A model generated the notes under the pieces. The model had not been told where the DNA came from. It searched no databases and saw only the letters and a list, made by a program, of their open reading frames with translations. A DNA stretch of 64,000 nt, from positions 216,020 through 280,019 of IMG/VR virus record IMGVR_UViG_3300042402_002641; one strand, written 5' to 3'. Each line of letters opens with the position of its first letter. Within the stretch, counting starts at the first letter, position 1. This document shows, piece by piece, positions 27,779 through 62,570 of the stretch. The position numbers and the translations under genes are program-made.

Positions 27779-27858
27779 AGAATGATTACAAATGCGTATC
27801 ATTTTCCGTTGGATGAAGTCAATTACTTACATGAGACTGAATTTTAATTGCAAATACG

Positions 27859-33215: not shown

Positions 33216-33216
33216 T

Positions 33217-36244: not shown

Positions 36245-36246
36245 AA

Positions 36247-46818: not shown

Positions 46819-47922
46819 TCATTTTATCAATCTAGATAGTTCTGGAAACACTTCGGCCCAGTTTAATCTACGTCTATAGTCTATGGCATCGAGTGCGTCA
46901 ATCCAGTTGAAGTTGTCACCATTTGTACTCGTTTGAATAAACCGTCTAAGACGTTCAAACTGAGGACCCATGGGTATAATTTCTAGCATGGCCGCTTTAA
47001 CATCGGCAGATACTGTGTCAAATGATAACTTCCCTATTGTTAGTTCTGGAGCTAGTATATAGGTAGTATTATCCTGTCTAAGCCCATTGAACCAATCAAC
47101 TAGCTTAGAAAACTCTAGGGCATTATGTACGCCGAGATTAGGGGCTATATTAATTACTAGCTGTTTATCAAATAGTTTGCCAAAGCTAGCTACATTGTTG
47201 GCTACTTCAGTCCAGTTTAATGGATAGCGTATGTATTCAAACTGTGGGCCTACAGCTTCTACACTACATATCAACATTATGCTCCTACATTCGTTCCAAA
47301 GAGCTACATCTTCCTTAGTAGGCATGATGCTACAATTGGTGTTGACCACCAGACTCAACTTATCTAACGAGCCCTGCTGCTCTTTAACTTTGGTTAGTAT
47401 CTTGTTAATATCTGTGCTTAGGAACGGCTCCCCCCCGTTGAAGTAAATCTGTGTTAACTTGCTAAAGTCCACGTTAAATTCCGGATCAGATTTACGTATT
47501 TGATTAAAACTGCGAAAGCCAACGCCTACAGTATTAAACTTTTCGTCCTCTGCGGCCCAAGCACTGCTCCAATTACTTCCACAGGTAATACATTTGGCAT
47601 TGCATAACGGAGCAACATTATAATGCATTGTTAATAACTCAACTTCATATGGATCTTCTGCCGGGTTAGCGATTCTTCTTTCTCTACTACTAGGCACACC
47701 TGCATCTTCTTTGCGCCAACAGAAGTTGCAGCTACTAGGTCTATTGCCTTTATTAAACTCTTCACGTTGGTTGGTTAGATATACATCTTTATGAAAATCA
47801 ATTACAGATATTGCTGGCCCTGTTTGGTTAACACAACAGGCGCTTATTTTAGCTTGATTATCAGGTTCGGCAGAAACATACAGTCCCTTATAAATTGCCG
47901 CACAATAGTTAGATTGAGTCAA
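46819..47922 (-). CDS. Radical SAM protein (twitch-like N-terminus), paralog of the 20-25 kb family
   Basis: 'CNAKCITC' and 'NGGEPF' motifs, N-terminal C...CC...CNFC, and C-terminal 'D.RR...W.EVFPEL'. Confidence 0.8.
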   Translation of the reverse strand: MTQSNYCAAIYKGLYVSAEPDNQAKISACCVNQTGPAISVIDFHKDVYLTNQREEFNKGNRPSSCNFCWRKEDAGVPSSRERRIANPAEDPYEVELLTMHYNVAPLCNAKCITCGSNWSSAWAAEDEKFNTVGVGFRSFNQIRKSDPEFNVDFSKLTQIYFNGGEPFLSTDINKILTKVKEQQGSLDKLSLVVNTNCSIMPTKEDVALWNECRSIMLICSVEAVGPQFEYIRYPLNWTEVANNVASFGKLFDKQLVINIAPNLGVHNALEFSKLVDWFNGLRQDNTTYILAPELTIGKLSFDTVSADVKAAMLEIIPMGPQFERLRRFIQTSTNGDNFNWIDALDAIDYRRRLNWAEVFPELSRLIK

Positions 47923-47936
47923 GATATGCTGAATAA

Positions 47937-48665
47937 TTAATTATTCTTTTTATTAGCTAACAAGTTTAACAGATTTTTAATTTTTGTCAAGTTTTTGTAT
48001 TCCAATATATTGTCAGTCATGCTATTAACGCTGTCTAATATTCGCTTATGGTACACGGATTTTAGAGGAACAACATCCATCTTAACAAAGAACAAACTGG
48101 TTTCGGAATCTATTTTGGCAGTGGTTTGTGTTTCAGATCTAAAATATAAATCTTCCAGGCCAACGGGGTCAATTTCTTTTTTGTTGTTAGGATGATTACT
48201 TAAATCAGGATTGGTAGTTATAGTCCAAACCCACCTGCGAAAACTCGCTTGTTCACACATTACTCTACTGATACCAGGACTGGCTTTTACCAACAGTTCA
48301 CTATCTGCTACCGGTCGATGAATATCTTCTAAAGTCATACCCAATCGTTGTGATGGGATAAAGCCGCTGGGAAAGCAAAAACAAATAGCTGTTAGTTTGC
48401 CTTGATGCATGACAGCAACATCTTCCTCCAGTCGTAGTGCTAGATCTTGGATTTGATTAGAGTATACACCGCAATATCTTGCAGCACGTTCTACGGTAGC
48501 TTCTGATCCTGCTATCTGACCAAATAAATCTGTGTTATACTTTGCTAATTCTTCTTTTTTCTTTTGTATTATGTCTAGATCAGGAGAAGAAATAAAAACA
48601 GGTCCGGTATTACGAATCATATTAGGACCTGTGGTATACGGTGTTTTTACAAAATCAATCTGCAT
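47937..48665 (-). CDS. DUF3445 / heme-dependent oxidative N-demethylase alpha-like protein
   Basis: 'EED..V...L.A..FCFPSG......LG..L..IH.PV', 'R.VWTI' and 'FRSETQT'. Confidence 0.65.
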   Translation of the reverse strand: MQIDFVKTPYTTGPNMIRNTGPVFISSPDLDIIQKKKEELAKYNTDLFGQIAGSEATVERAARYCGVYSNQIQDLALRLEEDVAVMHQGKLTAICFCFPSGFIPSQRLGMTLEDIHRPVADSELLVKASPGISRVMCEQASFRRWVWTITTNPDLSNHPNNKKEIDPVGLEDLYFRSETQTTAKIDSETSLFFVKMDVVPLKSVYHKRILDSVNSMTDNILEYKNLTKIKNLLNLLANKKNN

Positions 48666-49014
48666 GCCTAGTCAAAAAGTTAACCCGCATTTTCTTAGGA
48701 TGAAAATATTCATTGACTACCTGTTTTGCAACTTCAAGATCAAATTCTTTACAACTGAAAATATCAAAGTAGGCTGTGCCATCTAATTCCATAAAATGAC
48801 CACTGATGTTACTAGTAGTAATTAATTGCATGAGACTATATCCCTGTTTGGGATCGCCTGGTAGAAGATATTCGATGATAGGTTCTCCGTGTGCAGTCAT
48901 ATCGATACGTGCCACTAACTCTTTTACGAACTTGTATATGTTATCACGATCTTTTACGGCAGCTATGTCACAGCCGCTGCAATCTAATAATAAATGATAT
49001 CCCCAGTAGCTCAT
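48655..49014 (-). CDS. S-adenosylmethionine decarboxylase-like pyruvoyl proenzyme (SpeD family)
   Basis: 'GYHLLLDCSGC', 'GYS..QLITTSNISGHF' and 'YFDIFSCKEFD'. Confidence 0.75.
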   Translation of the reverse strand: MSYWGYHLLLDCSGCDIAAVKDRDNIYKFVKELVARIDMTAHGEPIIEYLLPGDPKQGYSLMQLITTSNISGHFMELDGTAYFDIFSCKEFDLEVAKQVVNEYFHPKKMRVNFLTRHAD

Positions 49015-49300: not shown

Positions 49301-49329
49301 ATTATACAGGAATAAAAAAAGCCAGTCAA
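49301..49329 (-). promoter_or_regulatory. Sigma70 promoter TTGACT-N17-TATAAT
   Basis: Near-consensus with a 17-nt spacer. Confidence 0.75.
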
Positions 49330-49341
49330 TGAATGACTGGC
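49314..49341 (-). terminator. Rho-independent terminator
   Basis: GCCAGTCA-N5-TGACTGGC followed by T7 on the minus strand. Confidence 0.8.
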
Positions 49342-49363
49342 TTAGGTTTACCAAACGGTTGAA

Positions 49364-50236
49364 TTATTTTTGAGCTTCACTGAGCACGTCGTACATTTCA
49401 AATACACCGCCGTTGCGCTCATAGATTAGACCAGCATAAAGTTCTGCTTTCATGCCTTCGCCCAGTTTGCTGGCAGCTACACGAGTAGCCCAGTTGAACA
49501 ATGACTTGTCTAGAGGATCGATCTGTTGTTGTCCGCCGCTTTCTTGAACCAGTTGTACCATCTGCTTGAAACTTAGTTTTTGTTCTATTGATTCTTTCAC
49601 CGGACGCTTTTTGCCTGTTGGCATCATCTTTGATTCATTCTTTTTGCCGAAGTATTTTGCTTGAGCAGCACTCATACCTTTCTTAGCGCCGTCTTTTTTA
49701 TCTTCGCCTTTCTCTCCAGCAGCTTTCTTCATTGGTTCTTTCTTGTCACCATCTTTGTCGATGTCTAGAAAGTCTGGCTTAGATCCTTCAGCCATCTTTT
49801 CTTTCTTGGCCATCTTCTTTTTCTTATCTGTTTCTTCTTTCTTGGCCTCAACCATCTTCATGAATTTGCTTTTGAATTCGGGTTCTACACTTTCTTTCTT
49901 AGCTTTCTTTTTGGACTTAGGAGCATCTTCATCATCATCTTCAGGTTCTGCCTTGCTGCCACCATAGTTCTTGCCAGCATGGTGTTTGACGCCTGTAGCA
50001 GTCTTTTCTATTGTGCCACCTGTAGAACTAGGTTTTTTATCGCCAGTTTTCATTTCTTCTTTGACATCTTCTTCTTTCTTTTTCTTGGCTTCAGCTACAT
50101 AGGTGCTTTGTCCTGCTAGCACACGCAGAGCAGCATCTTCGTTGAGCTGCACAGCTTTGTCTAGTACGGGAGCAGCTACCGTGGAGATCTGATCATCCAT
50201 TGAGCTGATTTTAGTGATAAGTGATTTAAAGTCCAT
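49364..50236 (-). CDS. K/E-rich putative prohead core/internal head protein
   Basis: Many LNE/VAE/VKE/MAE/KNE sites and a DxDxDG loop 'DIDKDGD'. Late promoter at 50269-50275. Confidence 0.55.
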   Translation of the reverse strand: MDFKSLITKISSMDDQISTVAAPVLDKAVQLNEDAALRVLAGQSTYVAEAKKKKEEDVKEEMKTGDKKPSSTGGTIEKTATGVKHHAGKNYGGSKAEPEDDDEDAPKSKKKAKKESVEPEFKSKFMKMVEAKKEETDKKKKMAKKEKMAEGSKPDFLDIDKDGDKKEPMKKAAGEKGEDKKDGAKKGMSAAQAKYFGKKNESKMMPTGKKRPVKESIEQKLSFKQMVQLVQESGGQQQIDPLDKSLFNWATRVAASKLGEGMKAELYAGLIYERNGGVFEMYDVLSEAQK

Positions 50237-50271
50237 AATCGATTCCTTGTTCCTAACAGTTGGTAATGTAT

Positions 50272-50532
50272 TTATCTTTTTACTGCAGAGCCAGCACCAA
50301 ACAAACTAGTGCTTTGATCTAGGGCATTTTTGGCCGTGCCGTCCTTGTTTTTAGGCTGGTGAACCTTGGGTTGTGGGGGTGATTTAGTACCTCCAGGGCC
50401 CCCCGGCTTGCCTAAATAGCTGGTCTTTCCTCGAGCTTTTCCTGGGCTAATATGCGGATTTACCACAGTACCTATGCTAGCAGCTGAAGTAGCACCGGCA
50501 GTAGCTGATTCTATGATTTCTTGTATTTTCAT
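50272..50532 (-). CDS. Small putative internal head protein
   Basis: N-terminal 'MKIQEIIE'. ATAAATA 5 nt upstream. Confidence 0.55.
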   Translation of the reverse strand: MKIQEIIESATAGATSAASIGTVVNPHISPGKARGKTSYLGKPGGPGGTKSPPQPKVHQPKNKDGTAKNALDQSTSLFGAGSAVKR

Positions 50533-50536
50533 AGTA

Positions 50537-51580
50537 TTATTTATTTTTTTTGGCTCTACCGGCTTTCATGTTAGCTAGCCAGTGTGCCATACGTGCTTTT
50601 TCACCTGATGAATTTTTAGCTGTTTTTCTTAGGCTGCTAACGCTGGCTTTGGTATTAACACCACTGCGTTTGGCAAGACCTTTGCGTCCTGGCTTCTTTC
50701 CATCTGCGAAATTTTCGTTGGCTTGCCGGCTCTGTGGCATGTGATCTTTGCCGTAACTGATACGACTGCCTGTGATAGTTTCTATAGCAACGTGCAGTGC
50801 TGTTCCGGATAGATGTTTACGCAGCCATTTCTCCGCTAGATTGTTGATGATCTTTTCATTGGCATGCACACGGCCGCTACCTTTGGTACGATCATGTACA
50901 TAAGCGTGGCATGCTTCGTGTGCTGCAATGGCAACATCTTTAGCGGCCTTACTTTCTAAATTTGGAATATTGATACTGCCACCGGGCCCCGAATCTTCAG
51001 TGTCTGTAAACATAGGAGAAGCACTGCTCTGATATACATAGTACATACCTGGCTCGATTTCTTCTTCATCGTCCGTTACACGATTTTTGCCTAATATACT
51101 TTGGATAGTCTCGTATGCAGTCCACAGTGTAGGAGCAGGTGCACCACCCACTCTTGTAGTTGGCAACATGGGTTTATCTTCGGAATCAAAATCGCCATAA
51201 CGCTGACGCAACTCGTCGTCACTGGCTTCAGCTTCTTTAACATCGTCGAACTCTTGCCCCTGAAGTTTTACCCCTACTATATCCTGTACCAGTTTCCATG
51301 CCAATCCCTTCTTACCTCGTTCTAGCAGTTGTTTGAACAGAGTTTTTTGTTCTTCATCAGCCATGCTGAAGAACTTGGCCAACTCCATCATGCCTATGTT
51401 ACCGGGATAAGATGCTTCGTGCTTAATGCTTTCTCCGCCACCACCGTCACCACCTGATGACCCACCGTCTCCGCTGTAGCCGGTATAGTAGCCATAGCCC
51501 CCATAGGGACCTGGACCGTATGCAGCCCAACGTGGTCTGCGCTTACGTTTTCTTTCAACAACAAATTCATGAGATTTCAT
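50537..51580 (-). CDS. Modular putative internal head polyprotein with HExxH module
   Basis: 'MKSHEFVVE', a Gly/Tyr-rich segment, 'AHEACHAY', and a basic C-terminal module after 'ANE'. Confidence 0.55.
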   Translation of the reverse strand: MKSHEFVVERKRKRRPRWAAYGPGPYGGYGYYTGYSGDGGSSGGDGGGGESIKHEASYPGNIGMMELAKFFSMADEEQKTLFKQLLERGKKGLAWKLVQDIVGVKLQGQEFDDVKEAEASDDELRQRYGDFDSEDKPMLPTTRVGGAPAPTLWTAYETIQSILGKNRVTDDEEEIEPGMYYVYQSSASPMFTDTEDSGPGGSINIPNLESKAAKDVAIAAHEACHAYVHDRTKGSGRVHANEKIINNLAEKWLRKHLSGTALHVAIETITGSRISYGKDHMPQSRQANENFADGKKPGRKGLAKRSGVNTKASVSSLRKTAKNSSGEKARMAHWLANMKAGRAKKNK

Positions 51581-51648
51581 ACAGGTGAATAAGGATTGCG
51601 TGGACGATCTGTACCGTCATCTTCTGGGTATACTGGATAGGGGTTCAT
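51577..51648 (-). CDS. 23-aa peptide (not in ORF track)
   Basis: MNPYPVYPEDDGTDRPRNPYSPV*. ATGA overlaps at both ends. Confidence 0.5.
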   Translation of the reverse strand: MNPYPVYPEDDGTDRPRNPYSPV

Positions 51649-51851
51649 ACAGGACGTTCTCCTGTGAGATACGGTAAACTGAACCATAATTGGAACCATT
51701 CTGGGGTACCTGGCTTTATGTTGTGTTTTTTCATAAGCTCACCTTTTTCATTGCCAGTAATTGAGATATTGCTCCCTTCGTAAGGTTGATAACCTTTGAA
51801 TTCTGTAATACCAGCTAACTTTTTGAGTTCGTTAATCTGCAGATCCGGCAT
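51645..51851 (-). CDS. Small hypothetical protein
   Basis: 'ELKKLAGITE' and 'IKPGTPEWFQLWF'. Confidence 0.65.
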   Translation of the reverse strand: MPDLQINELKKLAGITEFKGYQPYEGSNISITGNEKGELMKKHNIKPGTPEWFQLWFSLPYLTGERPV

Positions 51852-52881
51852 AATATTTTCCGTCTTTTCCTAGAGTTACGGTAACTGCGCTTAACCCTCT
51901 AACACCAACTAGTGTTGCTGGTACTTTAATTTCTTTTCCGCCCTTTGGAGCTGCCTCAGTTCTTCCAGCAAATTTATAAGTTTCGCCTTCGTATTCTATA
52001 GTATATGCTGCTGGCCACTGTGCTCCTGAGGTATATCTACTGCTTAAAGGAACTGCATCTTGTTTTGGTATATCGGATTGAGACACCTGAGTTGCGATTG
52101 GTTTACCAGTTAACCGGTTAATACTAGGATCTCCATCACCCGACACTCTAGCCGCAGCATTCCCTGCGCCTAAAGCCATAGCGCCTGCTAAACCTGCTGC
52201 CGCTAATTTTTCTTTCCAACCCTCATCTATACTTTCAGTGGCTTTCTCACCAGTTTTATAAACTTCCCACTTCTTACCAGTCTGTTCTGATTTTCTGCGA
52301 GCCATGTCTTTGAGTCTATAGTATTCGCGTTCTTCTTCCGGACTGTCGGCATAGGCACCATATGGTCCAGGAAACACTTTCCATTTCTTACCATTGATAT
52401 AGATAGCGAAATTATTACCAGGCTCTGTGTTGCCTTCATCCCAATCTTCTGGATCGCGAATTCTTTCTGTAGTTTTTCTCATACTTGGTGATACAGCAAT
52501 AATAGAATCAGGATCGACTCTAGGTTCAACCGTTAAAAACTTCCAACCCGGATCAACTACGATTTCAATATCGCCTCCGCTGTTAGGGAACGGTTTATTA
52601 TTTGCGTTCTTAATTTTAACCGCATCTTCGTCAAAGTCAACAGCAGTGACTATAGAAGGAAACTTTTCTCCTCTGCCCGTAGTATAGACTACTCGTTGGC
52701 CTACACGGAAATCATTGCCGGTTGCCTCCGCCACACCTTGATCATAGGGCTTCTTATGCTTAACATCGCCCTGTTTCTCAGCTCGCTTCTTGTCTTTGTG
52801 GACCCCAGCACCAGCAGTCTTAGAATTCTTAGCCACAAAGTTACGTGGTTTTGATGCGGGTATAAAATCTTTTGCTCTCAT
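51832..52881 (-). CDS. Modular putative internal head polyprotein
   Basis: Segments are delimited by QGVAE, TTE and ATE/IDE. Confidence 0.55.
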   Translation of the reverse strand: MRAKDFIPASKPRNFVAKNSKTAGAGVHKDKKRAEKQGDVKHKKPYDQGVAEATGNDFRVGQRVVYTTGRGEKFPSIVTAVDFDEDAVKIKNANNKPFPNSGGDIEIVVDPGWKFLTVEPRVDPDSIIAVSPSMRKTTERIRDPEDWDEGNTEPGNNFAIYINGKKWKVFPGPYGAYADSPEEEREYYRLKDMARRKSEQTGKKWEVYKTGEKATESIDEGWKEKLAAAGLAGAMALGAGNAAARVSGDGDPSINRLTGKPIATQVSQSDIPKQDAVPLSSRYTSGAQWPAAYTIEYEGETYKFAGRTEAAPKGGKEIKVPATLVGVRGLSAVTVTLGKDGKYYAGSAD

Positions 52882-53924
52882 ACAGTGATTCCTCTAGACC
52901 GAGTTCCGCCTTTGCGTTTGATTCTACTGAGTTCATCTAAAGCATGGCGAATCTGTTCCATGTTCATTTTTAATTCTTCAAACTGACGAGCCATTATTTG
53001 CCACTCGCTAGGACTAGCGCCATCAGCACGACTAGCAAGATCCTTTAATTGGCCAGCAGCACGTAGCATGCGATATTTTAATTTTGCAGGATTGGCTTTG
53101 TCATGGCTGTGAATCATGGGATCCATGGGATCTGCGGGATCCATCTCAATAGGAGCTTCTTTAATTGTGCCTTCATTTTTTTTGTACAGTGGAGATATAG
53201 ACCTTACAACGTCTTTTTTCATTTGATATGATTTGAAGAATTCTTTTTCTTTTTGACTCAACGGTCTATCGGTTTTAATTTTAGTCAGAATAAATTTAAA
53301 ATAAGCATCGTCATCTGCCAATTCGTTGATTGTGCTTTCGTTGATGCCCATACCGTTACGTACCGCTGAAAACAAAGGTTTAGCAAGTTCTCCTGCACCT
53401 GTAGCTTCTTTGAATCCTTCAAAGTCGTTGTTGGCAGCAGCAGCTCTAGCACCGCTGGCACTGACACCCGCTACACCTTCAGCTCCATCTTCACGTTCCC
53501 CACTGCTGACGAAATCCAGCACTTCGAAATCGTAGAATCCGTGTGCCTTGCCTTCAACACCGTTGTACTGTGTGAGAAGACTTTTCATATCTTCTAATCT
53601 ATCACTGCCTGCCACAAAGGTAGCACTGTTATATCCCTGCTCATGTAGGTATGAAGCCACCTTGCCTATGGTGTTAATGCCAGCATTATCGACCACATCA
53701 CCGGCGTATTCAGGAAACATTTCTTTGATAAATTTGATTTTAGTGGCATAGTCTAGAGGATTTTTCTTTTTATCCTGAGTCTGGCTGACAAATATCCTCA
53801 TGTCGCCACCTTGCTGCTTCATGGTGTCCAGTACCTGTTTGTGTCCAATGGTAGGAGGATTCATCCTGCCGAAACAGAACGTCACATGTTTTGCACCAGC
53901 TTCAAATAATTCTAACAGCAGCAT
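52878..53924 (-). CDS. Cytidylyltransferase-like (HxGH nucleotidyltransferase) with appended modules
   Basis: 'FGRMNPPTIGH', 'VAGSDR' and 'GVSASGAR'. N-terminal 'MLLLELFE'. Confidence 0.75.
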   Translation of the reverse strand: MLLLELFEAGAKHVTFCFGRMNPPTIGHKQVLDTMKQQGGDMRIFVSQTQDKKKNPLDYATKIKFIKEMFPEYAGDVVDNAGINTIGKVASYLHEQGYNSATFVAGSDRLEDMKSLLTQYNGVEGKAHGFYDFEVLDFVSSGEREDGAEGVAGVSASGARAAAANNDFEGFKEATGAGELAKPLFSAVRNGMGINESTINELADDDAYFKFILTKIKTDRPLSQKEKEFFKSYQMKKDVVRSISPLYKKNEGTIKEAPIEMDPADPMDPMIHSHDKANPAKLKYRMLRAAGQLKDLASRADGASPSEWQIMARQFEELKMNMEQIRHALDELSRIKRKGGTRSRGITV

Positions 53925-54259
53925 TAGTCGTAGTCGCCTTTTTCAAGATATTTTTCCTGCTCATCAGCAATGCGTTTTGCTAGGTCTATGAGTTTTTCTT
54001 TGGGAAACTTTTTTTCTCTATCATCGATGTCGTATTTTTCGCAGTAATGATCCAAACAGGTTTCGATAGGTCGTATATAAACTTTGAATACTCGTGGATT
54101 ACCTTGATGTTCTTTGTGTCTTTTCACAGCAGGAAAGAAATATTGGTTCAACATAGCATCGTCGTTGTCTATGAAGAACTTGAGATCGTCTAACCAATCA
54201 ATTTCTTGTTGATCATCTTTAGGTGCACCAATAGCACTCCACATTTCTCTTAACAGCAT
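53924..54259 (-). CDS. Hypothetical protein (putative head-associated)
   Basis: N-terminal 'MLLREMW'. 111 aa. Confidence 0.6.
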   Translation of the reverse strand: MLLREMWSAIGAPKDDQQEIDWLDDLKFFIDNDDAMLNQYFFPAVKRHKEHQGNPRVFKVYIRPIETCLDHYCEKYDIDDREKKFPKEKLIDLAKRIADEQEKYLEKGDYD

Positions 54260-55503
54260 TACCAGCTCCTACATGACCAATAACGTGCTTTCCAACGTGG
54301 ACCTGGATTTTTGCAGTTATGACGAGCACGGAAACTTTTTCTACGTGCTGGATTACTTTTCTTAATACGCATTTTCTTATCGCCGAAGTTTACCTTGACA
54401 ATATTGCCGTTAGGCTTGCGTACATATACTTTGGATTTCTTAACATCGCCAGCCATTTTCTTGCCCAGCGGAACTTCACGTCCTTGATACTTGGCTTCAT
54501 CTACATCACCTTCTTCCACGCCTTGCGATCTATAAACTCCGTCTACATTCTGTTTTGGTGTGCCACCGGTGGCCTGTACAACAGCAGTTAATAAATCGTT
54601 GAATTTTAATTTAGGATTAATTAACGCATTAGGAACAATAGTTTGGTCGCCATGTACTAGATCAACATCATCAAAGTAAAGTGGAGCATTTTTTTCTAAT
54701 CCCGCTTCTTTACGTAGCCAGTTTGTGAGTTTCTTTTGGTCGCCATTTTTTTCGTACCATTTAGCAACATTATAACCGTGTGCCGAACCTTCCGTCACGC
54801 CTTCTTCGTACTTCTGTGCTTTCATGTAATCACGGGCTGTGTCGATGTAGTCTACGGCTTTGGTGATCTTGCTCTGTACCCATTCTGGAAGATTGTCATC
54901 TGCTTGTAGAATGCTGTACAATTCTTCAGCGGCACTGTCTATAGTACGTAGATCATCCTTGGCCATGTCGCCTTCACGATCATACTCTCCGTAGTTTACA
55001 GGATCTTTGGGATCTTCAGGACCGTGGTCCTCCATTTTAACGCAGTTGTCTACGGTCTTGCCGCCTTTCTGTTTGGTGCCCATGCGCTTGTAACCTTTCC
55101 AACAGGCTTTGCCATCGACACCTTTTTGTTTGTCTTCTACTAATTCGCCCTCTAAAAACTCTAAACCCTCATTGGTCAGCATATCTATGGCAGTGTCATC
55201 CAATTCGATTACAATACCATCTTCTAGAATGTCTACAATTTCTGTGGCGATTTCGTGATCTTCAGAAAAACTAATGCCAAATGCATCACCTATCTGAAAT
55301 GATTCTGAAAATCCTTTGGCTTTGGCTTCTTTTTCGAGATCAGCCTTGCGTTGTATAATTGCTTGGGAAATTTCTGGATCTTTGTTGGCTGTGGGATCTG
55401 ATTCTAGATCGTCTAGTGCCTGTCTTTTGGCTTTGAGATCGTCCTGATCTTTAAGAGCTGTTTCGTTGACGATAGCGTCTAGTTTGGATATAAGGTCTCT
55501 CAT
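54259..55503 (-). CDS. Modular putative internal head polyprotein
   Basis: Modules include 'ACWKGYK..GTK.KGGKTV.NCV', 'EGDMAK..L...LPEWVQSKI' and 'AKYQGREV.L.K...ARYWSCR.W', separated by xxE linkers. Confidence 0.6.
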   Translation of the reverse strand: MRDLISKLDAIVNETALKDQDDLKAKRQALDDLESDPTANKDPEISQAIIQRKADLEKEAKAKGFSESFQIGDAFGISFSEDHEIATEIVDILEDGIVIELDDTAIDMLTNEGLEFLEGELVEDKQKGVDGKACWKGYKRMGTKQKGGKTVDNCVKMEDHGPEDPKDPVNYGEYDREGDMAKDDLRTIDSAAEELYSILQADDNLPEWVQSKITKAVDYIDTARDYMKAQKYEEGVTEGSAHGYNVAKWYEKNGDQKKLTNWLRKEAGLEKNAPLYFDDVDLVHGDQTIVPNALINPKLKFNDLLTAVVQATGGTPKQNVDGVYRSQGVEEGDVDEAKYQGREVPLGKKMAGDVKKSKVYVRKPNGNIVKVNFGDKKMRIKKSNPARRKSFRARHNCKNPGPRWKARYWSCRSW

Positions 55504-55534
55504 AGTATGTTCCGTAAGGTCATACTATATTTAT
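55502..55534 (-). promoter_or_regulatory. Late promoter ATAAATA plus start-codon-sequestering hairpin
   Basis: The ATAGTATG...CATACTAT 8-bp stem covers the ATG, and the promoter abuts the 5' arm. Confidence 0.6.
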
Positions 55535-55547
55535 CGAAACTCTATCT

Positions 55548-55913
55548 CTAATAACTATAACGGATTTCTGTGATCGTGCCTTCTTCCAGCTGGTAAGCAG
55601 CACGGATATACACGAATTTGCCTGTGAATGTACACGCAGCGTTATTTGTTAGGGGGGTACTATCAATAGCGGTCAATGTTACATCAGCACTATCATAGAC
55701 TATATCAAACCAATCCGCATCACCAGGATACAGTTCTAGAGTAGCCTGTATCTTGACGGATCCTTTGAAATTATCAAACTCAAATACCGCGGTATGGACT
55801 CCGTTGTTGTTTCGGTAGTAACCTGCAGCTGGACTTTTGGCAGAATATTGATAGTTGGGATACTGACTGTTATCAGCAGTAGCGGCCAGCAGTACACGAG
55901 TTTGATTGGACAT
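55548..55913 (-). CDS. Beta-rich late protein (possible virion protein)
   Basis: 'FKGSVKIQATL...W...FTGKFVYIRA'. ATAAATA 4 nt upstream (55918-55924). Confidence 0.55.
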   Translation of the reverse strand: MSNQTRVLLAATADNSQYPNYQYSAKSPAAGYYRNNNGVHTAVFEFDNFKGSVKIQATLELYPGDADWFDIVYDSADVTLTAIDSTPLTNNAACTFTGKFVYIRAAYQLEEGTITEIRYSY

Positions 55914-55916: not shown

Positions 55917-56597
55917 TTATTTATCGGAGATAACAAAGTTGTAGATCTTGCCCACCACTTCGGCATTACGCAGCTTCATCATTAACAGGGTCTGATCATC
56001 TTCTACCAACACATATCTGCGATCCCAGTTCCAGTCTGTGGCCAAAAACCATTTTTCCACAGCAGGTGTGCAGGTCACATGTGGTATCTGTGTTTTTAAC
56101 CAGTCGATATAGCGTTTTTTGCCTGGACGATCGTTGGCCATTTTATGTGGTAATAGATATACCCTGTAGTTGAATCTATCTTTGGGTAGTTTTTTTACAG
56201 TAATAGAGTTTTTATTTTCGTTAAGTATGTCTATAGAATCTGTTGAAGGCTCGAAACAGTGTTTTAACTGAGATCCAAATTTAATAATTGCACCGTTATA
56301 AAAATCTACATCATTGGTGTACAGATCGATAGTGTTACGTTCTATTCTTGTGGCGTATTGTGTCTTATCATAAACTTCTAAAAACTCACATAGGACTAGA
56401 ATTTCCTCACGATTATTCCAATATTCTAGTTTGTATCGATATCGGTCAATTTCGGGTTCAGGACCTTTACAGAAATCTTTGATTGCATCAATGGTATGCA
56501 ATCTCAGCATTGTGCAACCTCTGAGATTTACAGTAACCTTGTACAGCCATTTGCCGTAGAATTTATGATTGGTGTATTTGATTTTCTGGTTCTGCAT
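55917..56597 (-). CDS. Hypothetical protein
   Basis: 226 aa, overlapping the clpA 3' end. Confidence 0.65.
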   Translation of the reverse strand: MQNQKIKYTNHKFYGKWLYKVTVNLRGCTMLRLHTIDAIKDFCKGPEPEIDRYRYKLEYWNNREEILVLCEFLEVYDKTQYATRIERNTIDLYTNDVDFYNGAIIKFGSQLKHCFEPSTDSIDILNENKNSITVKKLPKDRFNYRVYLLPHKMANDRPGKKRYIDWLKTQIPHVTCTPAVEKWFLATDWNWDRRYVLVEDDQTLLMMKLRNAEVVGKIYNFVISDK

Positions 56598-58917
56598 TTT
56601 TTCCAGCCTCTTCTAGACTCTGTTGTGCTTTCAGCAATTTGCGTTCAGCTTTGGTCAAAGGTTTAGGCAATTCAGTTACAACAAAATCTAGTTTATCATC
56701 TACGATATCTACAGTAACACGACCACCGTTAACTAGATCTCCAAACAGCACTCTGCGACTCAGGGGTGATTTAACTTCATTGTCTATCAATCTTGCCAAC
56801 GGTCTAGCACCCATCTTGGAATCATAGCCACGCTCTGCTAGATATTTTGCTGCCTTGGCGGTCAACACTATCTCTATGCCTTTGTCTTTGAGTTGTGAAT
56901 TGAGATCTCCCACAAACTTCTTAACAATCTGTTCAACCACTTTGTGGTCTAGCTTACCAAATTTGATAACAGCATCTAGTCGATTGCGGAATTCAGGCGC
57001 AAAGAATTTCTTAATGGCTTTGTCATCTTCGTCGTCACGCTCTAGTGTACCAAAACCTATCGAGTTACGTTCGTTGTCTGCGGCTCCTAGGTTACTGGTC
57101 ATAATAAGGATGCAGTTGCGGCCATCTGCTTGCTTACCATTTGAACCTGTGACAAATCCATTGTCCATGAATGCCAACAAGATGTTCATGACATCCGGGT
57201 GTGCTTTTTCTACCTCATCTAATAATAGAATGCTGTTAGCATGCTCTTGCAGTTTGGTAATCAGCTGTCCGGCATTGTCTTCGTAGCCCACGTATCCCGG
57301 AGGAGCTCCGATCAACCGTGCTACAGAATGTTTCTCCTGATATTCACCCATATCAAATCGAATCAACTGCATGCCCATCTTGTCTGCTAGTTGTTTGGCA
57401 GTTTCTGTTTTACCTGTGCCTGTTGGACCAGAGAATAAAAAACTACCAATGGGTTTGTTAGGAGCTTTCATGCCTGCCTGACTAACAAAGATTTTATCCA
57501 GCAGTGTTTCTACTGCACGATCCTGTCCATAGACTACACCCTTCATCTGAGAATCTAAATCACTGAGATTCTTTGATTCTTTTTGTGCCACGGTTTCTAA
57601 AGGCATGTTAATCATTTTACTCAACTCGTAAGTGACCTGTTCAATGTCTACAATCTGTGGTACACCTTCCATACCTTCATCATCTTTTAGTTTATATCTG
57701 GCGCTGGCACAATCTATAATGTCAATAGCCTTATCTGGCAGTTTTTTATCTGCCATGTATTTGACACTGAGTTTAACTGCCTGTTCTATAGCAGCATCTG
57801 ATATTTTTACATTGTGATGACTTTCGTAGTATTTTTTAAGTCCTTTTAGAATCTTTATAGACATTTCTTCAGACGGTTCTTCGATAGTCACACGTTGGAA
57901 TCTACGCATCAGAGCACGATCACTTTCAAAGTGTTTGCGATATTCTTCCCAGGTAGTAGATGCTATCAGCTTAATTACACCCTTGGTCAGTATGGGTTTC
58001 AGCATGTTGCTCATGTCGTTGGAACTTTGATTAGCTGCTCCTGCTCCCTGCATCATATGTGCTTCATCTATGAATAGAATAATTTTGCCTTTCTTTTCCA
58101 ACGCTGCTAACACTGCCTTGACACGTTCTTCAAAATCACCTCTATACTTAGACCCTGCCAACATGGCAGAAATATCTAAGGTATAGACCTGATGATCTTG
58201 TATGAATTTAGGAACCTTCTTTTCATGTATCTTGCGAGCGATACCTTCGGCGATGGCAGTTTTACCTACTCCGGGATCTCCTACCATCAACACATTGGCT
58301 TTGTTTCTACGAGCCAACACCAATTGTATTTTTTCAATTTCTTCATCGCGGCCAATTACTGGATCGAGTTTGCGTTGTTTGGCTTTGAGGCTGAGATTGG
58401 TGCAGAATTGATTGAGAATCCTATCGATCTGATTACTAGACACCTGTTTGATTTCTCCTTCAACATCCACAGACTCTGGTTGTACTATGTTTTCTTGGAA
58501 AAATTTAACAAACTTTTCTTTAGTGACTCCGCCTTTTTGTAGAAAGTAAAAACCAAAACTGTTCTTCTCACTGAGCACACTGATAATCACGTCAGCCACT
58601 TCCATGCGTTGACGTCCACTAAACAACACCTGAGTAAAACAGCGATTCAGCACACGCTCTACTGAATTAGTTTTTTTAGGTTTATAGTTTTTTTCTGCGG
58701 TCTTAATGTCGTTGAGATTGTTTTTTAGATAATGATCGAGATTGGTTTTAACAAAGGCAGCGTCTGCCCCAAAACTTTCTAACAGAGTGTAGGTTTCTTG
58801 ATCACTGATCATAGCATATACAATATGTTCTATGGTAATGTACTCATGTCCAAGACCTTTAGCCAAATTGATAGAGTTTTCAAAAATGTCTTGTAGGTGT
58901 TTGCTGGGTTCTATCAC
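56563..58917 (-). CDS. clpA: ClpA-like ATP-dependent Clp protease ATP-binding subunit
   Basis: Clp N domain, Walker A motifs GDPGVGKT and GPTGTGKT, pore loop GYVG and IGF ClpP-docking loop. No M domain. Confidence 0.88.
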   Translation of the reverse strand: MIEPSKHLQDIFENSINLAKGLGHEYITIEHIVYAMISDQETYTLLESFGADAAFVKTNLDHYLKNNLNDIKTAEKNYKPKKTNSVERVLNRCFTQVLFSGRQRMEVADVIISVLSEKNSFGFYFLQKGGVTKEKFVKFFQENIVQPESVDVEGEIKQVSSNQIDRILNQFCTNLSLKAKQRKLDPVIGRDEEIEKIQLVLARRNKANVLMVGDPGVGKTAIAEGIARKIHEKKVPKFIQDHQVYTLDISAMLAGSKYRGDFEERVKAVLAALEKKGKIILFIDEAHMMQGAGAANQSSNDMSNMLKPILTKGVIKLIASTTWEEYRKHFESDRALMRRFQRVTIEEPSEEMSIKILKGLKKYYESHHNVKISDAAIEQAVKLSVKYMADKKLPDKAIDIIDCASARYKLKDDEGMEGVPQIVDIEQVTYELSKMINMPLETVAQKESKNLSDLDSQMKGVVYGQDRAVETLLDKIFVSQAGMKAPNKPIGSFLFSGPTGTGKTETAKQLADKMGMQLIRFDMGEYQEKHSVARLIGAPPGYVGYEDNAGQLITKLQEHANSILLLDEVEKAHPDVMNILLAFMDNGFVTGSNGKQADGRNCILIMTSNLGAADNERNSIGFGTLERDDEDDKAIKKFFAPEFRNRLDAVIKFGKLDHKVVEQIVKKFVGDLNSQLKDKGIEIVLTAKAAKYLAERGYDSKMGARPLARLIDNEVKSPLSRRVLFGDLVNGGRVTVDIVDDKLDFVVTELPKPLTKAERKLLKAQQSLEEAGKNAEPENQIHQS

Positions 58918-59772: not shown

Positions 59773-59801
59773 AGTATACAATAAAAATAGGACTACGTCA
59801 A
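59773..59801 (-). promoter_or_regulatory. Sigma70 promoter TTGACG-N17-TATACT (dnaJ, leaderless)
   Basis: 17-nt spacer, 6 nt to the ATG. Confidence 0.7.
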
Positions 59802-59810
59802 GTAGTCCTA
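59781..59810 (-). terminator. Rho-independent terminator
   Basis: TAGGACTAC-N5-GTAGTCCTA followed by TTTTTATT. Confidence 0.75.
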
Positions 59811-61320: not shown

Positions 61321-61941
61321 TTATTTAACTGATTCGAAGATTTTCTTCTGGTCTCGGTACCATTCCTGCCAGGCCCTTAGTTTTTCTGCGTTTTCGTGGC
61401 AGGCTCCGTAGTTTTCGACGACGGTGTCGAGGAGCCTACTGGCTTCAACTCCACTGGGGGTTCCATCAGTTGCGGCGGCACGCTCGGGAATTTCATTACG
61501 ACTGGCGCTGTCGTGCAAGCTGACAGTAGACTTAGGCAAAGTACACTGAGCATCCAGTTGCTTACCCGCAACTTCTTTGATAATTTCTCTATTGACATAT
61601 ACATTTTCCTTGACGACTTTAATCTTTGTAACAACTCGTGTTTCTATCACTGTGTTAACCTGCTGACTTTTTTCTTCTGCGATTTTAACTTTTGCTTCTA
61701 GTTCTCTTACACGGTCGCGCCATAGCATTTCTGTGCCATAGCTGCCAAACATATATACTCCTACCATTAATACACCTACTCCGATCAGTTCTGATGGTAA
61801 CTTGTACTGCGACATCAAAGGAATCCATGCCACTAGTTTGCTGGCCACATACAGTCCTGCTCCTAGGATCATCAATACATAGGTGATCCATACGAAAAAA
61901 CTATCCGGGATAAGACTTAACATCCATCCTAGTTGAGCCAT
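61321..61941 (-). CDS. Inner-membrane spanin (Rz-like)
   Basis: Start refined to MAQLGW. N-terminal TMs, a coiled coil, and 'CTLP...LHD.A...VVENYGACHENAEKL'. Follows the endolysin. Confidence 0.7.
   Translation of the reverse strand: MAQLGWMLSLIPDSFFVWITYVLMILGAGLYVASKLVAWIPLMSQYKLPSELIGVGVLMVGVYMFGSYGTEMLWRDRVRELEAKVKIAEEKSQQVNTVIETRVVTKIKVVKENVYVNREIIKEVAGKQLDAQCTLPKSTVSLHDSASRNEIPERAAATDGTPSGVEASRLLDTVVENYGACHENAEKLRAWQEWYRDQKKIFESVK
61377..61571 (-). CDS. Outer-membrane spanin lipoprotein (Rz1-like), nested in another frame
   Basis: Lipobox LSAC followed by Pro-rich 'PVVMKFPSVPPQLMEPP'. The start is uncertain (TTG 61571 or ATG 61553). Confidence 0.65.
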   Translation of the reverse strand: MRVSNWMLSVLCLSLLSACTTAPVVMKFPSVPPQLMEPPVELKPVGSSTPSSKTTEPATKTQKN

Positions 61942-62570
61942 TAGTGTGCTCCGAAGATATGCAGTGCGTGTTCGTAATGTTTGATGCGATCTTCTAGACC
62001 AATAGTACCACCGTTGATGCGTTTGGTCAGCGTGAGGATATCTCCTGAGTCTGCCCACTTGTTGAGATTGTTCTGTTCCCAAAAGAAACAAGCACTCTGT
62101 ACAGCACCTTCAAATGTCTGTAGGTATTCGGATGCTTCCTCTACAGGTACATCTATACTGGCTGCAAAGAATGTATAGTTGTCTTTGCCGGTAAGCTGGA
62201 TCAGCCCACGACCGCAGTAGCGCCAACCATCGCCGGAATCTTCCGGACCATTGCCCATCCTATTGGCATAGACTCTGTTGGCTATGCGTTCTGGTTTGTT
62301 GGCATATGCGGCTGCGGTGGCATCGTCTGGAAAGTATTTAGGAAACACCTTGCGCAGACTGGCGGCCTTGTAGTTGAGGTTCTCTTTGAGAAAAACAAAT
62401 CCACCGCTTTCATGAGCGCATTGCGCTAGGAAAGCTGCCACACGCTGAGGAGTGTTGATTTCATATTCTGGAAGAATGCTAGAGATAGCTTCATACCATT
62501 GTGACACATAGGAATTCCGTGGAATCATTTCTTTCAACTGTTCTTGAGTAAAGTTAAATGTAAAGCTCAT
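61941..62570 (-). CDS. Glycoside hydrolase family 19 endolysin
   Basis: 'AAFLAQCAHESGGF...ENLNY', 'YCGRGLIQLTGKDNY' and 'TKRINGG..GLEDR'. Confidence 0.9.
   Translation of the reverse strand: MSFTFNFTQEQLKEMIPRNSYVSQWYEAISSILPEYEINTPQRVAAFLAQCAHESGGFVFLKENLNYKAASLRKVFPKYFPDDATAAAYANKPERIANRVYANRMGNGPEDSGDGWRYCGRGLIQLTGKDNYTFFAASIDVPVEEASEYLQTFEGAVQSACFFWEQNNLNKWADSGDILTLTKRINGGTIGLEDRIKHYEHALHIFGAH

Follow-up and report, generated by a model that had tools for sequence, protein, structure and literature searches.

The internal proteins IPI, IPII and IPIII and the Alt protein of bacteriophage T4 carry a short N-terminal capsid targeting sequence (CTS) that is removed by cleavage with gp21, and the IP loci of T-even phages are hyperplastic (PMC3012670, PMC5694885). 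The inner-body or ejection proteins of the phiKZ-like giant phages phiKZ, 201phi2-1 and SPN3US are also processed by the prohead protease. Many of these head-internal proteins are cut after Glu, sometimes at several sites, and at least one mature fragment, that of SPN3US gp47, begins with a transmembrane segment (PMC5694885). In those phages the motif is (S/A/G)-x-E, and the identified cuts produce N-terminal propeptides that are discarded (PMC10052503). The polyvalent proteins of phages and conjugative elements combine disparate domains in one polypeptide, are predicted to be packaged and injected, and are possibly released by proteolysis (Iyer et al. 2017, PMC5512222). Viral polyproteins with internal signal sequences, such as those of flaviviruses, provide an analogy only; in these, one translation product yields several proteins and internal signal peptides direct parts of it across a membrane.

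We analysed a 64,000-nucleotide stretch of DNA (the window) from a giant freshwater phage, a T4-related jumbo phage of ~280 kb. Eight co-oriented genes in this window (49364-55503, minus strand) resemble the T4 internal protein system in several ways: leaders of the MKxxxEFxxE type that end in a hydrophobic-x-Glu site, conserved leaders followed by highly variable cargo, a T4-type late-promoter-like motif, basic cargo, and a gp21-type protease in the clade. However, a T4 IP is one cargo behind one leader with a single cut, whereas here up to seven unrelated modules are chained with a candidate cut site at each junction, modules move between genes, some modules would expose Sec/Tat signals, and two members use copies of scaffold and major capsid protein (MCP) segments instead of, or in addition to, a CTS. 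There is no sequence homology to the T4 IPs. Compared with the phiKZ-like proteins, P3 is I/V/L, the pieces on both sides of a cut look like functional modules, and the phage belongs to a different group (group 2, gp23-type MCP, no virion RNAP). Polyvalent proteins are very large, carry a characteristic repertoire (MuF, ART, methylase-helicase, MPTase, etc.) and are proposed to self-process through embedded peptidases; none of those domains was found here apart from a sporadic zincin-like module, and the cut sites match the head protease. Flaviviruses are eukaryotic RNA viruses that use co-translational signal peptidase and viral protease cleavage, whereas the cleavage proposed here is inside a phage prohead and export would be post-translational.

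Table 1. Features of the array and its surroundings (window coordinates; E^X marks a predicted cut after E).
Coordinates	Strand	Feature	Description
49319..49343	-	Terminator	Intrinsic terminator closing the array, followed by a sigma-70-like promoter (49329-49301) for the DsbA-like gene
49364..50236	-	g290	Lys/Glu-rich, low-complexity protein; conserved leader MDFKSLI(T/S)KI
50269..50276	-	Late-promoter-like motif	GATAAATA, upstream of g290
50272..50532	-	g86	Leader 1-8 (MKIQEIIE^), then SATAGATSAAS..., a copy of the MCP maturation site and mature N-terminus of related jumbo phages
50538..50545	-	Late-promoter-like motif	AATAAATA, upstream of g86
50537..51580	-	g347	Polyprotein; leader 1-9 (MKSHEFVVE^R); basic/Gly-Tyr module 10-55; helical module 56-116; zincin-like HEACH module 117-289; basic C-terminal module 290-347 (NFADGK...)
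51645..51851	-	g68	Small protein; N-terminus INELKKLAGITEF copies the C-terminal tail of the scaffold protein of related phages
51832..52881	-	g349	Leader MRAKDFIP; DUF7230 head 1-52 (GVAE^A); module 53-139 (beta-barrel-like in the initial annotation; fold not tested); module 140-220 (RIRDPEDWDEGNTE..., ends SIDE^G); module 221-349, starting with a Sec-type signal peptide, GWKEKLAAAGLAGAMALGAGNAAA
52878..53924	-	g348	Leader 1-8 (MLLLELFE^A); cytidylyltransferase-like module 9-196 (HxGH); mini-linker 197-201; module 202-256; module 257-348 (APIEMDP...)
53924..54259	-	g111	Conserved 111-aa protein; MLLREMW, leader MLL(K/R)EM(F/W)S; not modular
54259..55503	-	g414	Polyprotein; MRDLISKLDAIVNE; leader 1-14 (AIVNE^T); modules 15-67, 68-123, 124-158 (Cys pair), 159-238, 239-331/336 and 337-414 (basic, DUF5754-like); predicted cuts after E14, E67, E123, E158, E238, E331/E336
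55528..55535	-	Late-promoter-like motif	GATAAATA, about 25 nt upstream of the g414 start
55548..55913	-	g121	Upstream neighbour with its own conserved GATAAATA motif; resembles virion structural protein families
59801-59773		Sigma-70-like promoter	Upstream of the operon
61941-62570		Endolysin-like gene	Separate from the array

The initial annotation described consecutive late genes with similar short leaders and with bodies made of unrelated modules separated by (I/L/V/M)xE-type linkers, and this observation was confirmed. The genes and leaders are exactly where they were placed. The HxGH nucleotidyltransferase is real (PF01467, E 1.1e-07), and the Cys-pair module, the HExxH module (HEACH) and the signal-peptide-like segment GWKEKLAAAGLAGAMALG are all present. 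One correction is needed. The raw density of [LIVM]xE in the array (1.9 per 100 aa) is not higher than in the rest of the window (1.5), so the list of xxE triplets is not by itself beyond chance. Many [LIVM]xE also lie inside predicted folded modules, so the motif alone cannot define cleavage. What is far beyond chance is the coincidence of these triplets with module breakpoints in orthologues. The designation of the genes as late is supported only indirectly, by the promoter motifs described below. g68, like g111, is not modular.

The leaders are strongly conserved in about 70 syntenic related loci, while the bodies vary from 57 to 818 aa. We verified the T4 CTS sequences from NC_000866 (MKTYQEFIAE^A). 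A strict T4-CTS-like pattern matches 3 of 8 array genes, 0 of 73 other window genes and T4 IPII/IPIII itself, and it fits 57 distinct leader variants in relatives.

Whether module boundaries in orthologues fall at the xxE linkers had been put forward with the initial annotation as a way to test its reading, and boundaries that ignored the linkers would have counted against it. We examined 378 distinct orthologous array proteins from 80 related contigs. Sharp homology breakpoints begin on Glu in 68 of 161 distinct contexts (42%; random 6.5%) and within 3 residues of Glu in 121 of 161 (75%; random 17.8%), although the contexts are not phylogenetically independent. Asp accounts for only 14 of the N-boundaries, and at C-boundaries Glu outnumbers Asp by 65 to 1, although the two residues are about equally common. 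At 95 distinct junction Glu, P3 is I24 V22 A7 L7 M6 F4 (about 74%, against roughly 38% at all Glu in the array), but some junctions have a non-hydrophobic P3 (KHE, TTE, TDE). P1' is A/N/D/T/S/G.

Modules move between genes, and leaders can be fused directly to terminal modules. Each module of g414 has independent homologues (in cyanophages, pelagiphages, roseophages and an archaeal virus), and breakpoints in this protein cluster at 121, 158, 173-175, 235-238 and 327-334. Its module 12-75 sits inside g349 orthologues in the related loci L030-L037, and its C-terminal module is a 79-aa stand-alone viral family. For g348, 555 phage records match only residues about 14-196/216. In three related loci (L016, L038 and L052) a signal-peptide module is inserted after the NTase module, and the junction triplets before APIEM are ISE, VTE, VSE, IKE and VKE. 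Orthologues of g349 are 56-422 aa long and are built from different module sets after the same head. Orthologues of g347 are 66-581 aa long and range from the leader fused directly to NFADGK (MRASEFIVE^NFADGK) to chains carrying HAD/NT5C, zincin, and signal peptide + GH19; Glu precedes every junction seen. In an AF2 model of g347, domains 58-115 and 297-345 are confident, whereas E9, E55 and E289 lie in linkers with pLDDT<50. Module 117-289 has Zn-metallopeptidase structural neighbours (TM 0.61).

Internal Sec/Tat-like signal segments show a similar placement. Of 31 distinct internal cases, 27 follow xxE and sit just after a junction Glu, at a distance of 4-9 residues. Two are textbook Tat signals, and there are Pfam TAT_signal hits.

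Three links point to the prohead. The first is the MCP maturation site. Among related jumbo phages, 115 MCPs have (L/I/V/M)xE^(S/T/A)ATAGATSAGN(I/V)A, with P3 distributed as L106/I6/V2/M1, and [LIVM]xE runs at 9.5 per 100 aa in the propeptide against 0.2 in the mature MCP. g86 copies this site plus the next 10-14 residues, and its orthologues read MKIREI(L/F)E^(S/T)ATAGATSAGN(I/V)A. The next link is g68. Of 118 scaffold proteins encoded next to the MCP, 97 end in ..L(K/R)(K/R)LAG(I/L)xx, and g68 starts with this tail (LKKLAGI). The pattern L[KRQ][KRQ]LAG[IL] occurs once in the six-frame translation of the window, in g68, and is conserved in all g68 orthologues. The last link is the T4-like late-promoter motif [GA]ATAAATA. 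It is present in 24 of 24 distinct upstream regions of g414 orthologues, 25 of 25 for g121, 31 of 31 for g86 and 26 of 28 for g290, and is absent before clpA, g226 and dsbA. ATAAATA occurs only 9 times in the whole window. g121 itself matches phrog_14467 ('virion structural protein', 1.6e-06) and phrog_13657. Related jumbo phages have a gp21 homologue (phmmer E 1e-15 to 1e-19), and group 2 jumbo phages carry a gp21/S77 protease (PMC7824862). Three walks from the window and two head-gene searches did not recover this phage's own MCP, scaffold or protease, and the head-protein motifs therefore come from relatives in the same superclade; one of these, L276, shows 52-61% identity in neighbouring baseplate genes.

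Published virion proteomics of cyanophage S-CREM2 detected homologues of the array proteins (PMC10665884), namely the cytidylyltransferase homologue and neighbouring multi-module proteins. The alignment of g348 to S-CREM2 virion protein ORF154 (38% identity, E 1e-34) stops at INE196/KNE218, and the Cys-pair module of g414 matches virion protein ORF160 (E 1e-6). These detections are of low coverage (3-7 peptides) in a list that also holds unlikely virion proteins, and no proteomic or biochemical data exist for the phage studied here or its close relatives. The cultured phage Melnitz has MKKFSEIIE^A followed by the NTase and 4 or more modules in one 650-aa ORF.

Based on these results, we propose with moderate confidence that the array encodes prohead-internal (ejection-type) proteins that are cut by a gp21-type protease. 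In this model the genes are transcribed late, and each product is brought into the assembling prohead by one of three devices: a short N-terminal T4-CTS-like leader (g347, g86, g348, and probably g414 and g349), a copy of the scaffold's C-terminal tail (g68), or a copy of the capsid protein's N-terminal arm (g86). Inside the prohead, the maturation protease would cut after Glu in (I/V/L/M)-x-E, which would remove the leaders and separate g414, g348, g349 and g347 at every module junction. One gene would therefore yield 3-7 small independent proteins, including a cytidylyltransferase-like enzyme, a zincin-like module, Cys-pair and basic DNA-binding-like modules, and modules whose new N-terminus is a Sec or Tat signal peptide. 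The pieces would leave the head with the DNA at the next infection, so that many small proteins, some with export signals, would be delivered into the next host from a few genes. Because function would need only a Glu-bearing junction, modules could be freely gained, lost and moved between genes, which would make the locus hyperplastic. Our analysis demonstrates the anatomy of the array, the coincidence of breakpoints with Glu, the mimicry of head-protein motifs and the conservation of the late-promoter-like motifs; the presence of homologues in virions is taken from a published study, and every step of the model is inferred, as neither cleavage, packaging in this phage nor injection was observed. 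The model must also accommodate the sigma-70-like promoter upstream of the operon, which makes early read-through expression possible, and the storage of hydrophobic signal peptides inside a DNA-filled head, which is unprecedented.

The interpretation in the initial annotation, that one targeting leader loads many small effectors that are cut apart in the head and injected as an anti-defence/takeover arsenal, is supported only in part. The T4-CTS-like leaders, the shuffled modules with (I/V/L)xE junctions and the link to the prohead support it in silico. The idea of one leader loading many effectors fits g414, g348, g349 and g347, but not g111, g68 or g86. The anti-defence label is not supported: no recognisable anti-defence domain appeared in Pfam or PHROGs (PADLOC was not run). 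The repertoire consists of cell-wall hydrolases (GH19, M23, LysM, PG-binding), Sec/Tat-signal modules, nucleotide enzymes (cytidylyltransferase-like, NT5C/HAD), a zincin-like module and basic tails, and looks envelope- and nucleotide-directed.

We considered three other explanations, all of which seem unlikely. The least improbable is that the polyproteins are cut at xxE outside the capsid, in the cytoplasm of the producing cell, by another Glu-specific protease (a second phage protease, an embedded zincin module or a host enzyme), and that the released signal-peptide modules (GH19, M23, small periplasmic domains) are exported by Sec/Tat in the same cell to serve lysis, superinfection exclusion or envelope remodelling. 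Signal peptides and cell-wall hydrolases suit proteins exported by the cell that makes them, the G/A-rich hydrophobic segments resemble signal-arrest-release domains of endolysins, a sigma-70-like promoter lies upstream, and some members contain zincin-like modules. However, zincin modules are present in only a minority of loci, so they cannot be the general processing enzyme, and the window already has a separate endolysin-like gene. The T4-CTS-like leaders and the copies of the MCP site and scaffold tail have no role in a cytoplasmic scheme, the junction motif matches the MCP site of the clade's prohead protease, and homologues are found in purified virions.

It is more doubtful that these are ordinary multidomain fusions that are never cut, in which the Glu reflects a preferred acidic linker or the way illegitimate recombination joins cassettes, and the hydrophobic segments are internal membrane anchors. 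The background xxE density fits this view, multi-DUF viral proteins of 270-800 aa holding the same modules are common, and internal type II signal anchors do not need a free N-terminus. But the boundary residue is Glu and not Asp, and P3 is hydrophobic in about 74% of junctions while P2 varies freely, which is the signature of a protease site and not of a linker. The upstream contexts differ completely, so there is no shared nucleotide homology to guide recombination, and Tat signals after a 60-aa unrelated head and AxA sites 20 residues after the Glu are hard to explain without a new N-terminus. We regard as least likely the possibility that the array encodes prohead core or scaffold accessory proteins that are chopped up and expelled during maturation, like T4 gp22/gp67/gp68, with modules that have no life after cleavage. 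T4 core proteins are cut into small fragments (PMC5694885), g68 and g86 mimic scaffold and MCP segments, and g290 is Lys/Glu-rich with the highest [LIVM]xE density in the array (3.8 per 100 aa). Against this, many modules are recognisable enzymes or widespread stand-alone proteins in phages that lack T4-type heads, such as pelagiphage podoviruses and an archaeal spindle virus, and extreme cargo variability behind conserved leaders is the pattern of T4 internal proteins, not of scaffolds (PMC3012670).

g290 shows no module breakpoints and only noise-level similarity to T4 gp67/gp22; it is possibly a core/scaffold-like or DNA-associated internal protein. g111 has a constant length and 62-97% identity across loci, and gave no Pfam, PHROG or tblastn hit. 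The terminator that closes the array has a 10-bp stem and a T-run, and the promoter that follows it reads TTGACT-17-TATAAT (11 of 12).

The window forms the last 64 kb of a 280,019-bp viral contig (positions 216,020-280,019), and the gp43-type DNA polymerase that it encodes is closest to those of the jumbo phages Phosso (50%), Atu_ph07 (46%) and GAP32-like phages. These phages belong to the T4-related 'group 2' jumbo phages, which carry a gp23-type capsid protein and a gp21/S77 prohead protease (PMC7824862). The finding concerns eight co-oriented genes of this phage. Upstream of them lie a ClpA-like ATPase, g226 and g121, the last of which resembles a virion structural protein, and downstream lie an intrinsic terminator followed by DsbA-like, SpeD, radical-SAM and DNA polymerase genes. 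Pfam and PHROGs searches with the eight proteins gave only PF01467, a sub-threshold DUF7230 hit and unnamed PHROGs, and tblastn searches with g347, g349 and g111 against 50,697 phage records returned no match.

Positions of the array genes and of other features mentioned in the text (window coordinates unless stated)
Feature	Coordinates	Strand
g414	55503-54259	-
g111	54259-53924	-
g348	53924-52878	-
g349	52881-51832	-
g68	51851-51645	-
g347	51580-50537	-
g86	50532-50272	-
g290	50236-49364	-
ClpA/ClpB-like AAA+ ATPase	56563-58917	-
Terminator with sigma-70-like promoter, upstream of the array	59773-59810	-
Terminator with sigma-70-like promoter, downstream of the array	49301-49343	-
SpeD-like gene and radical-SAM protein	48655-49014 and 46819-47922	-
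Region suggesting 7-deazaguanine-type DNA modification	30748-36996	-
GTP cyclohydrolase I-like gene	36247-36996	
Phosphoribosyltransferase-like gene	34224-34835	
QueE-like radical SAM gene	32183-33037	
Low-G+C gene block	16000-28000	+
1262-aa structural protein	69-3857	
Giant ORF, on a contig reaching left of the window start	L241:1-10100	

The leaders of several array proteins resemble the capsid targeting sequence (CTS) of T4 internal proteins. We read the T4 sequences from NC_000866, where IPII and IPIII have MKTYQEFIAE↓A and IPI has MKTFKEFTS...ITE↓A (the arrow marks a known or predicted cut). A strict pattern, M[KRL]x1-3[DE][FILMV][FILMVWT]x0-1E, fits T4 IPII/III as well as g347 (MKSHEFVVE), g86 (MKIQEIIE) and g348 (MLLLELFE), but none of the 73 other window genes. 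It also fits 106 of 378 distinct array proteins in relatives, with 57 leader variants. g414, g349, g111 and g290 have other conserved leaders. A hydrophobic-x-Glu motif is present at every leader end (VVE↓R, IIE↓S, LFE↓A, VNE↓T) and matches the MCP maturation site of the clade, although cleavage itself was not measured. In about 70 syntenic loci retrieved with g348, every gene keeps its leader while the bodies range from 57 to 818 aa and carry different module sets. This is the pattern described for the hyperplastic internal-protein loci of T-even phages (PMC3012670).

The initial annotation described these proteins as strings of unrelated modules separated by (I/L/V/M)xE-type linkers, and this observation held. 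However, the raw frequency of [LIVM]xE is ordinary (1.9 per 100 aa in the array against 1.5 in the rest of the window), so the annotation's list of triplets proves nothing alone and we did not use motif enrichment as evidence. The annotation had also proposed a comparison of orthologues, asking whether module boundaries coincide with these linkers, and this comparison was decisive. g414 is a mosaic in which residues 124-160, 175-244 and 329-414 each have separate homologues in cyanophages, pelagiphages, roseophages and even a Nitrosopumilaceae virus. In the g347 family the leader is fused directly to the terminal module in some phages (MRASEFIVE↓NFADGK), whereas in others up to six different modules are inserted. 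In every junction seen by eye a Glu precedes the switch (VGE↓, EHE↓, TDE↓, VKE↓, ANE↓, IKE↓, NVE↓ and others). Modules also move between genes: g349 residues 205-265 sit inside g348 orthologues, and g414 residues 12-75 sit inside g349 orthologues.

We quantified this pattern with an all-against-all BLASTP of the 378 proteins. An analysis of all HSPs was noisy, with E-E in 22% of termini, and we therefore kept only HSPs of at least 60% identity with sharp ends. Among 161 distinct N-side contexts, the first aligned residue was Glu in 68 (42%, compared with 6.5% at random positions), and Glu lay within the first three aligned residues in 121 (75%, compared with 17.8%). Asp, which is about as frequent as Glu in composition, was the first aligned residue in only 14. 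Among 204 C-side contexts, the last aligned residue was Glu in 65 and Asp in one. At 95 distinct junction Glu residues, P3 was I24, V22, A7, L7, M6 and F4 (about 74%, against roughly 38% at all Glu), P2 varied freely (ISE, VTE, VSE, IKE and VKE all precede APIEM), and P1' was A, N, D, T, S or G. The contexts are not phylogenetically independent, so these numbers describe a pattern and do not give a probability. The pattern is the footprint of a protease site of the T4 gp21 type, not of an acidic linker.

A scan for uncharged hydrophobic stretches found 31 distinct internal ones, of which 27 have a Glu within 9 residues upstream. The typical form is xxE↓GWKEK-LAAAGLAGAMALGAGNAAA, with a basic n-region, a hydrophobic h-region and an AxA site. 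Two are textbook twin-arginine signals (VDE↓DISRRGFLRGIGAAAAGIGAASTAQA and VDE↓VDRRGFLKGLG...), and the Pfam TAT_signal model hits one member. The segments occur at depths of 55-624 residues, and in relatives they are followed by GH19, LysM or small beta-rich domains. Their fixed spacing from a junction Glu is most simply explained if cleavage makes them N-terminal. We also asked whether some of these modules resemble SAR or signal-anchored endolysins, in which a weakly hydrophobic G/A-rich export segment stands at the N-terminus of a muralytic domain. In relatives, GH19 modules are preceded by E↓GWKDW-AAGALG... segments, but these lie 55-300 residues inside the ORF and would be N-terminal only after cleavage, and no GH19 module is present in the window's own array, so that the comparison does not speak clearly either way.

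Additional links point to the prohead. Related contigs (L253-L287), including L276, a 231-kb contig whose baseplate genes are 52-61% identical to genes just beyond the window end, have portal, gp21-like protease, scaffold and MCP genes in T4 order (phmmer E 1e-15 to 1e-19 against T4 gp21 and 1e-39 to 1e-50 against gp23). Whether this very genome encodes the same protease and capsid protein is not settled by our searches. A walk from the right end of the window found baseplate, clamp-loader and MazG genes; a walk from the left end found one uninterrupted ORF of at least 3366 aa, a giant virion or fibre protein that precedes the 1262-aa structural protein; a walk guided by L276 synteny found no head genes; and a portal alignment search and an MCP search returned other clades only. 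In 115 MCPs from relatives the maturation site is L106/I6/V2/M1-x-E↓S72/T25/A11, followed by ATAGATSAGN(I/V)ATLN, and [LIVM]xE runs at 9.5 per 100 aa in the roughly 40-aa propeptide but at 0.2 in the mature protein. The g86 family reads MKIREI(L/F)E↓(S/T)ATAGATSAGN(I/V)A, which is the same cleavage site plus the first 10-14 mature residues of the MCP. The scaffold proteins next to those MCPs end in ..(I/L)(I/V)xL(K/R)(K/R)LAG(I/L)xx in 97 of 118 loci, and the g68 family begins M..EL(K/R)(K/R)LAGI(T/N)EF; in the six-frame translation of the window this motif occurs only there. As the C-terminal tails of other phage scaffolds bind the coat protein, the g68 N-terminus is, by analogy, a plausible second address tag. 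Finally, the N-termini of MCP and scaffold (MSEKLFE..., MSQNLFEN..., MLDALKTLFEN...) resemble the g348 leader (MLLNELFE).

The timing of expression was addressed through promoter motifs. The exact T4 late promoter TATAAATA has only two hits in the window and none in the array, but its relaxed core proved informative. ATAAATA occurs only nine times on both strands of the window, against roughly 28 expected by our own estimate from base composition, and most copies sit just upstream of start codons (3854, 29305, 30039, 50275, 50544, 55534, 55924, 62641, 63848), which is consistent with selection against stray late promoters. Four of them lie 6-35 nt upstream of g121, g414, g86 and g290. [GA]ATAAATA is present in 25/25, 24/24, 31/31 and 26/28 distinct upstream regions of their orthologues, respectively, and in none of the upstream regions of clpA, g226, g348, g349, g68 or dsbA. 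The terminators on either side of the array are each immediately followed by, or overlap, a near-consensus sigma-70-type promoter (TTGACG-17-TATACT upstream and TTGACT-17-TATAAT downstream) and look like punctuation between transcription units. The upstream pair could also drive early read-through, and no RNA-family or read-mapping analysis was included. Thus, late expression is likely but not exclusive.

An experimental anchor comes from the literature. The virion proteome of the T4-like cyanophage S-CREM2 lists the cytidylyltransferase ORF154 and the adjacent ORF155, ORF156 and ORF160 (PMC10665884). g348 residues 17-196 align with ORF154 (38% identity, E 1e-34), and the alignment ends at INE196/KNE218, after which each protein continues with a different module. 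ORF154 starts MKNFSSFLTE↓A. ORF160 carries the Cys-pair module of g414 (E 1e-6) and a module found in g349 orthologues. This evidence for a virion location of the array proteins is indirect only. The cultured phage Melnitz encodes a 650-aa ORF that reads MKKFSEIIE↓A, then the NTase, an SH3-like module (assigned by eye), the Cys-pair module, further sequence and the g414 C-terminal module. The ESM Atlas shows that this C-terminal module is a 79-aa stand-alone viral family (1932 members) that is also embedded in 270-800-aa viral multi-DUF proteins with CTP_transf_like. Small genes next to the cytidyltransferase in the cyanophages S-WAM2 and S-CREM2 start with T4-IPI-like leaders (MKTFKQLREE, MKDFKKLREE, MKNFSSFLTE), and CTS-like leaders may therefore be widespread in Kyanoviridae.

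AF2 predictions for the g347 family give confident small domains at 58-115 and 297-345, and linkers with pLDDT below 50 contain E9, E55 and E289. Module 117-289 (HEACH) has Zn-metallopeptidase structural neighbours (TM 0.61), which is a lead and not proof. The g414 model was too poor to use (mean pLDDT 50), and no fold search was run with it. In some relatives the g347-type leader is followed by a HAD/NT5C-type 5'-nucleotidase module (KKLVVFDIDDTLV...), and an SprT/WLM-like zincin (HELVHRKQNE) also occurs.

Based on these results, the best-supported mechanism is late synthesis, recruitment to the prohead by CTS-like leaders or by scaffold/MCP mimicry, cleavage at every (I/V/L)xE junction by the gp21-type protease, storage with the DNA, and ejection. 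We consider this model more likely than not. The leaders, the modular anatomy, the coincidence of breakpoints with Glu, the copies of head-protein motifs and the conserved late-promoter-like motifs were seen directly in the sequences, and the presence of homologues in virions is taken from a published proteome; the late synthesis, recruitment, cleavage, storage and ejection steps are inferred. The initial annotation's interpretation, that one targeting leader loads many small effectors that are cut apart in the head and injected as an anti-defence arsenal, is supported only in part. The anti-defence label is not supported, although PADLOC was not applied. A Pfam scan of 98 array proteins found CTP_transf_like 13, DUF7230 9, GH19 8, PG_binding 2, LysM 2, M23 1, NT5C 2, HAD 1, several DUFs, and one GIY-YIG that is probably a homing endonuclease. 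Cargo directed at the envelope and at nucleotides is a better description.

Other explanations appear less likely. Cleavage might take place outside the head, with export of the products in the producing cell, and although we think this improbable, it is the strongest of the alternatives. It is more doubtful that the proteins are never cut, as the junctions have the footprint of a protease site. Least likely is that they are disposable core proteins. phmmer and blastp comparisons of array proteins with T4 and L276 head proteins and with T4 internal proteins gave no significant whole-protein homology, the array lies beside ClpA-like, DsbA-like and DNA polymerase genes and not beside head genes, and only short segments of g68 and g86 copy scaffold and MCP motifs. 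We also considered the ClpA-like ATPase as a reader of the leaders. It is a full-length two-ring ClpA/ClpB-like protein (784 aa), 42-44% identical to ClpA genes of Phosso, PA5oct-like and other jumbo phages, and it sits three genes upstream of the array, with no ClpP seen in the window. No evidence bears on such a role, and the gene lacks the late-promoter motif.

The system belongs with the T4 internal proteins, but differs in chaining many modules per leader, in junction-based module shuffling, in exposing export signals, and in using copies of head-protein segments as tags. In the phiKZ-like inner body or ejection proteins the cleavage motif is (S/A/G)-x-E and the phages belong to the nucleus-forming, vRNAP-bearing giant phage group, whereas here P3 is I/V/L/M in 59 of 95 junctions and the DNA polymerase, and the head genes of related contigs, are of the T4/group 2 type. 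In SPN3US, all identified prohead-protease cuts other than the protease's own self-cleavage yield N-terminal propeptides (PMC10052503). The array proteins share with polyvalent proteins (Iyer et al. 2017, PMC5512222) the chaining of disparate domains (two to 15 in that class) in a virion or late-gene context, here NTase, GH19, M23, LysM, NT5C/HAD, zincin and DUF modules with late-promoter-like motifs. However, polyvalent proteins have another repertoire and are proposed to self-process; none of their characteristic domains (MuF, ART, DarB-like methylase-helicase, MPTase, PBECR and others) was found in the 98 array proteins, and a zincin-like module occurs only in a minority of members. Full-text literature searches yielded no description of such a system.

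If our model is right, T4-type capsid targeting is not limited to a handful of single-cargo internal proteins in coliphages, but would be a general, modular delivery platform in abundant aquatic phages (this freshwater jumbo clade, Melnitz and cyanomyoviruses). It would explain many multi-DUF 'hypothetical proteins' and the long-puzzling conserved 'cytidyltransferase' of cyanophages as virion cargo, and it would give a simple sequence rule, (I/V/L)xE at module junctions, for splitting such ORFs into functional units. It would also raise the testable idea that phages inject proteins destined for the periplasm, and would offer natural address tags for packaging foreign proteins into large capsids. 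A further possibility, which we regard as unlikely, is that the phage stores a pre-made 'secretome' in its head. In this view, prohead-protease cleavage would create dozens of small proteins whose new N-termini are Sec or Tat signal peptides, and these would be ejected with the DNA and then exported by the Sec/Tat machinery of the newly infected cell, or act directly in the periplasm, remodelling the envelope before any phage gene is expressed. Loading would use three interchangeable address tags (a CTS-like leader, a scaffold-tail mimic and an MCP-arm mimic), and any ORF could then be plugged in by adding a Glu junction.

Elsewhere in the window, the SpeD-like (S-adenosylmethionine decarboxylase) gene and the radical-SAM protein between the array and the DNA polymerase are auxiliary metabolic genes shared with cyanophages. 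The GTP cyclohydrolase I-like, QueE-like radical SAM and phosphoribosyltransferase-like genes suggest a 7-deazaguanine-type DNA modification pathway. Between the tail-fibre genes and the minus-strand block are about a dozen tightly packed genes with markedly lower G+C (0.32-0.36 against about 0.41 elsewhere); they were not annotated, and are possibly a horizontally acquired sugar or surface-modification island.
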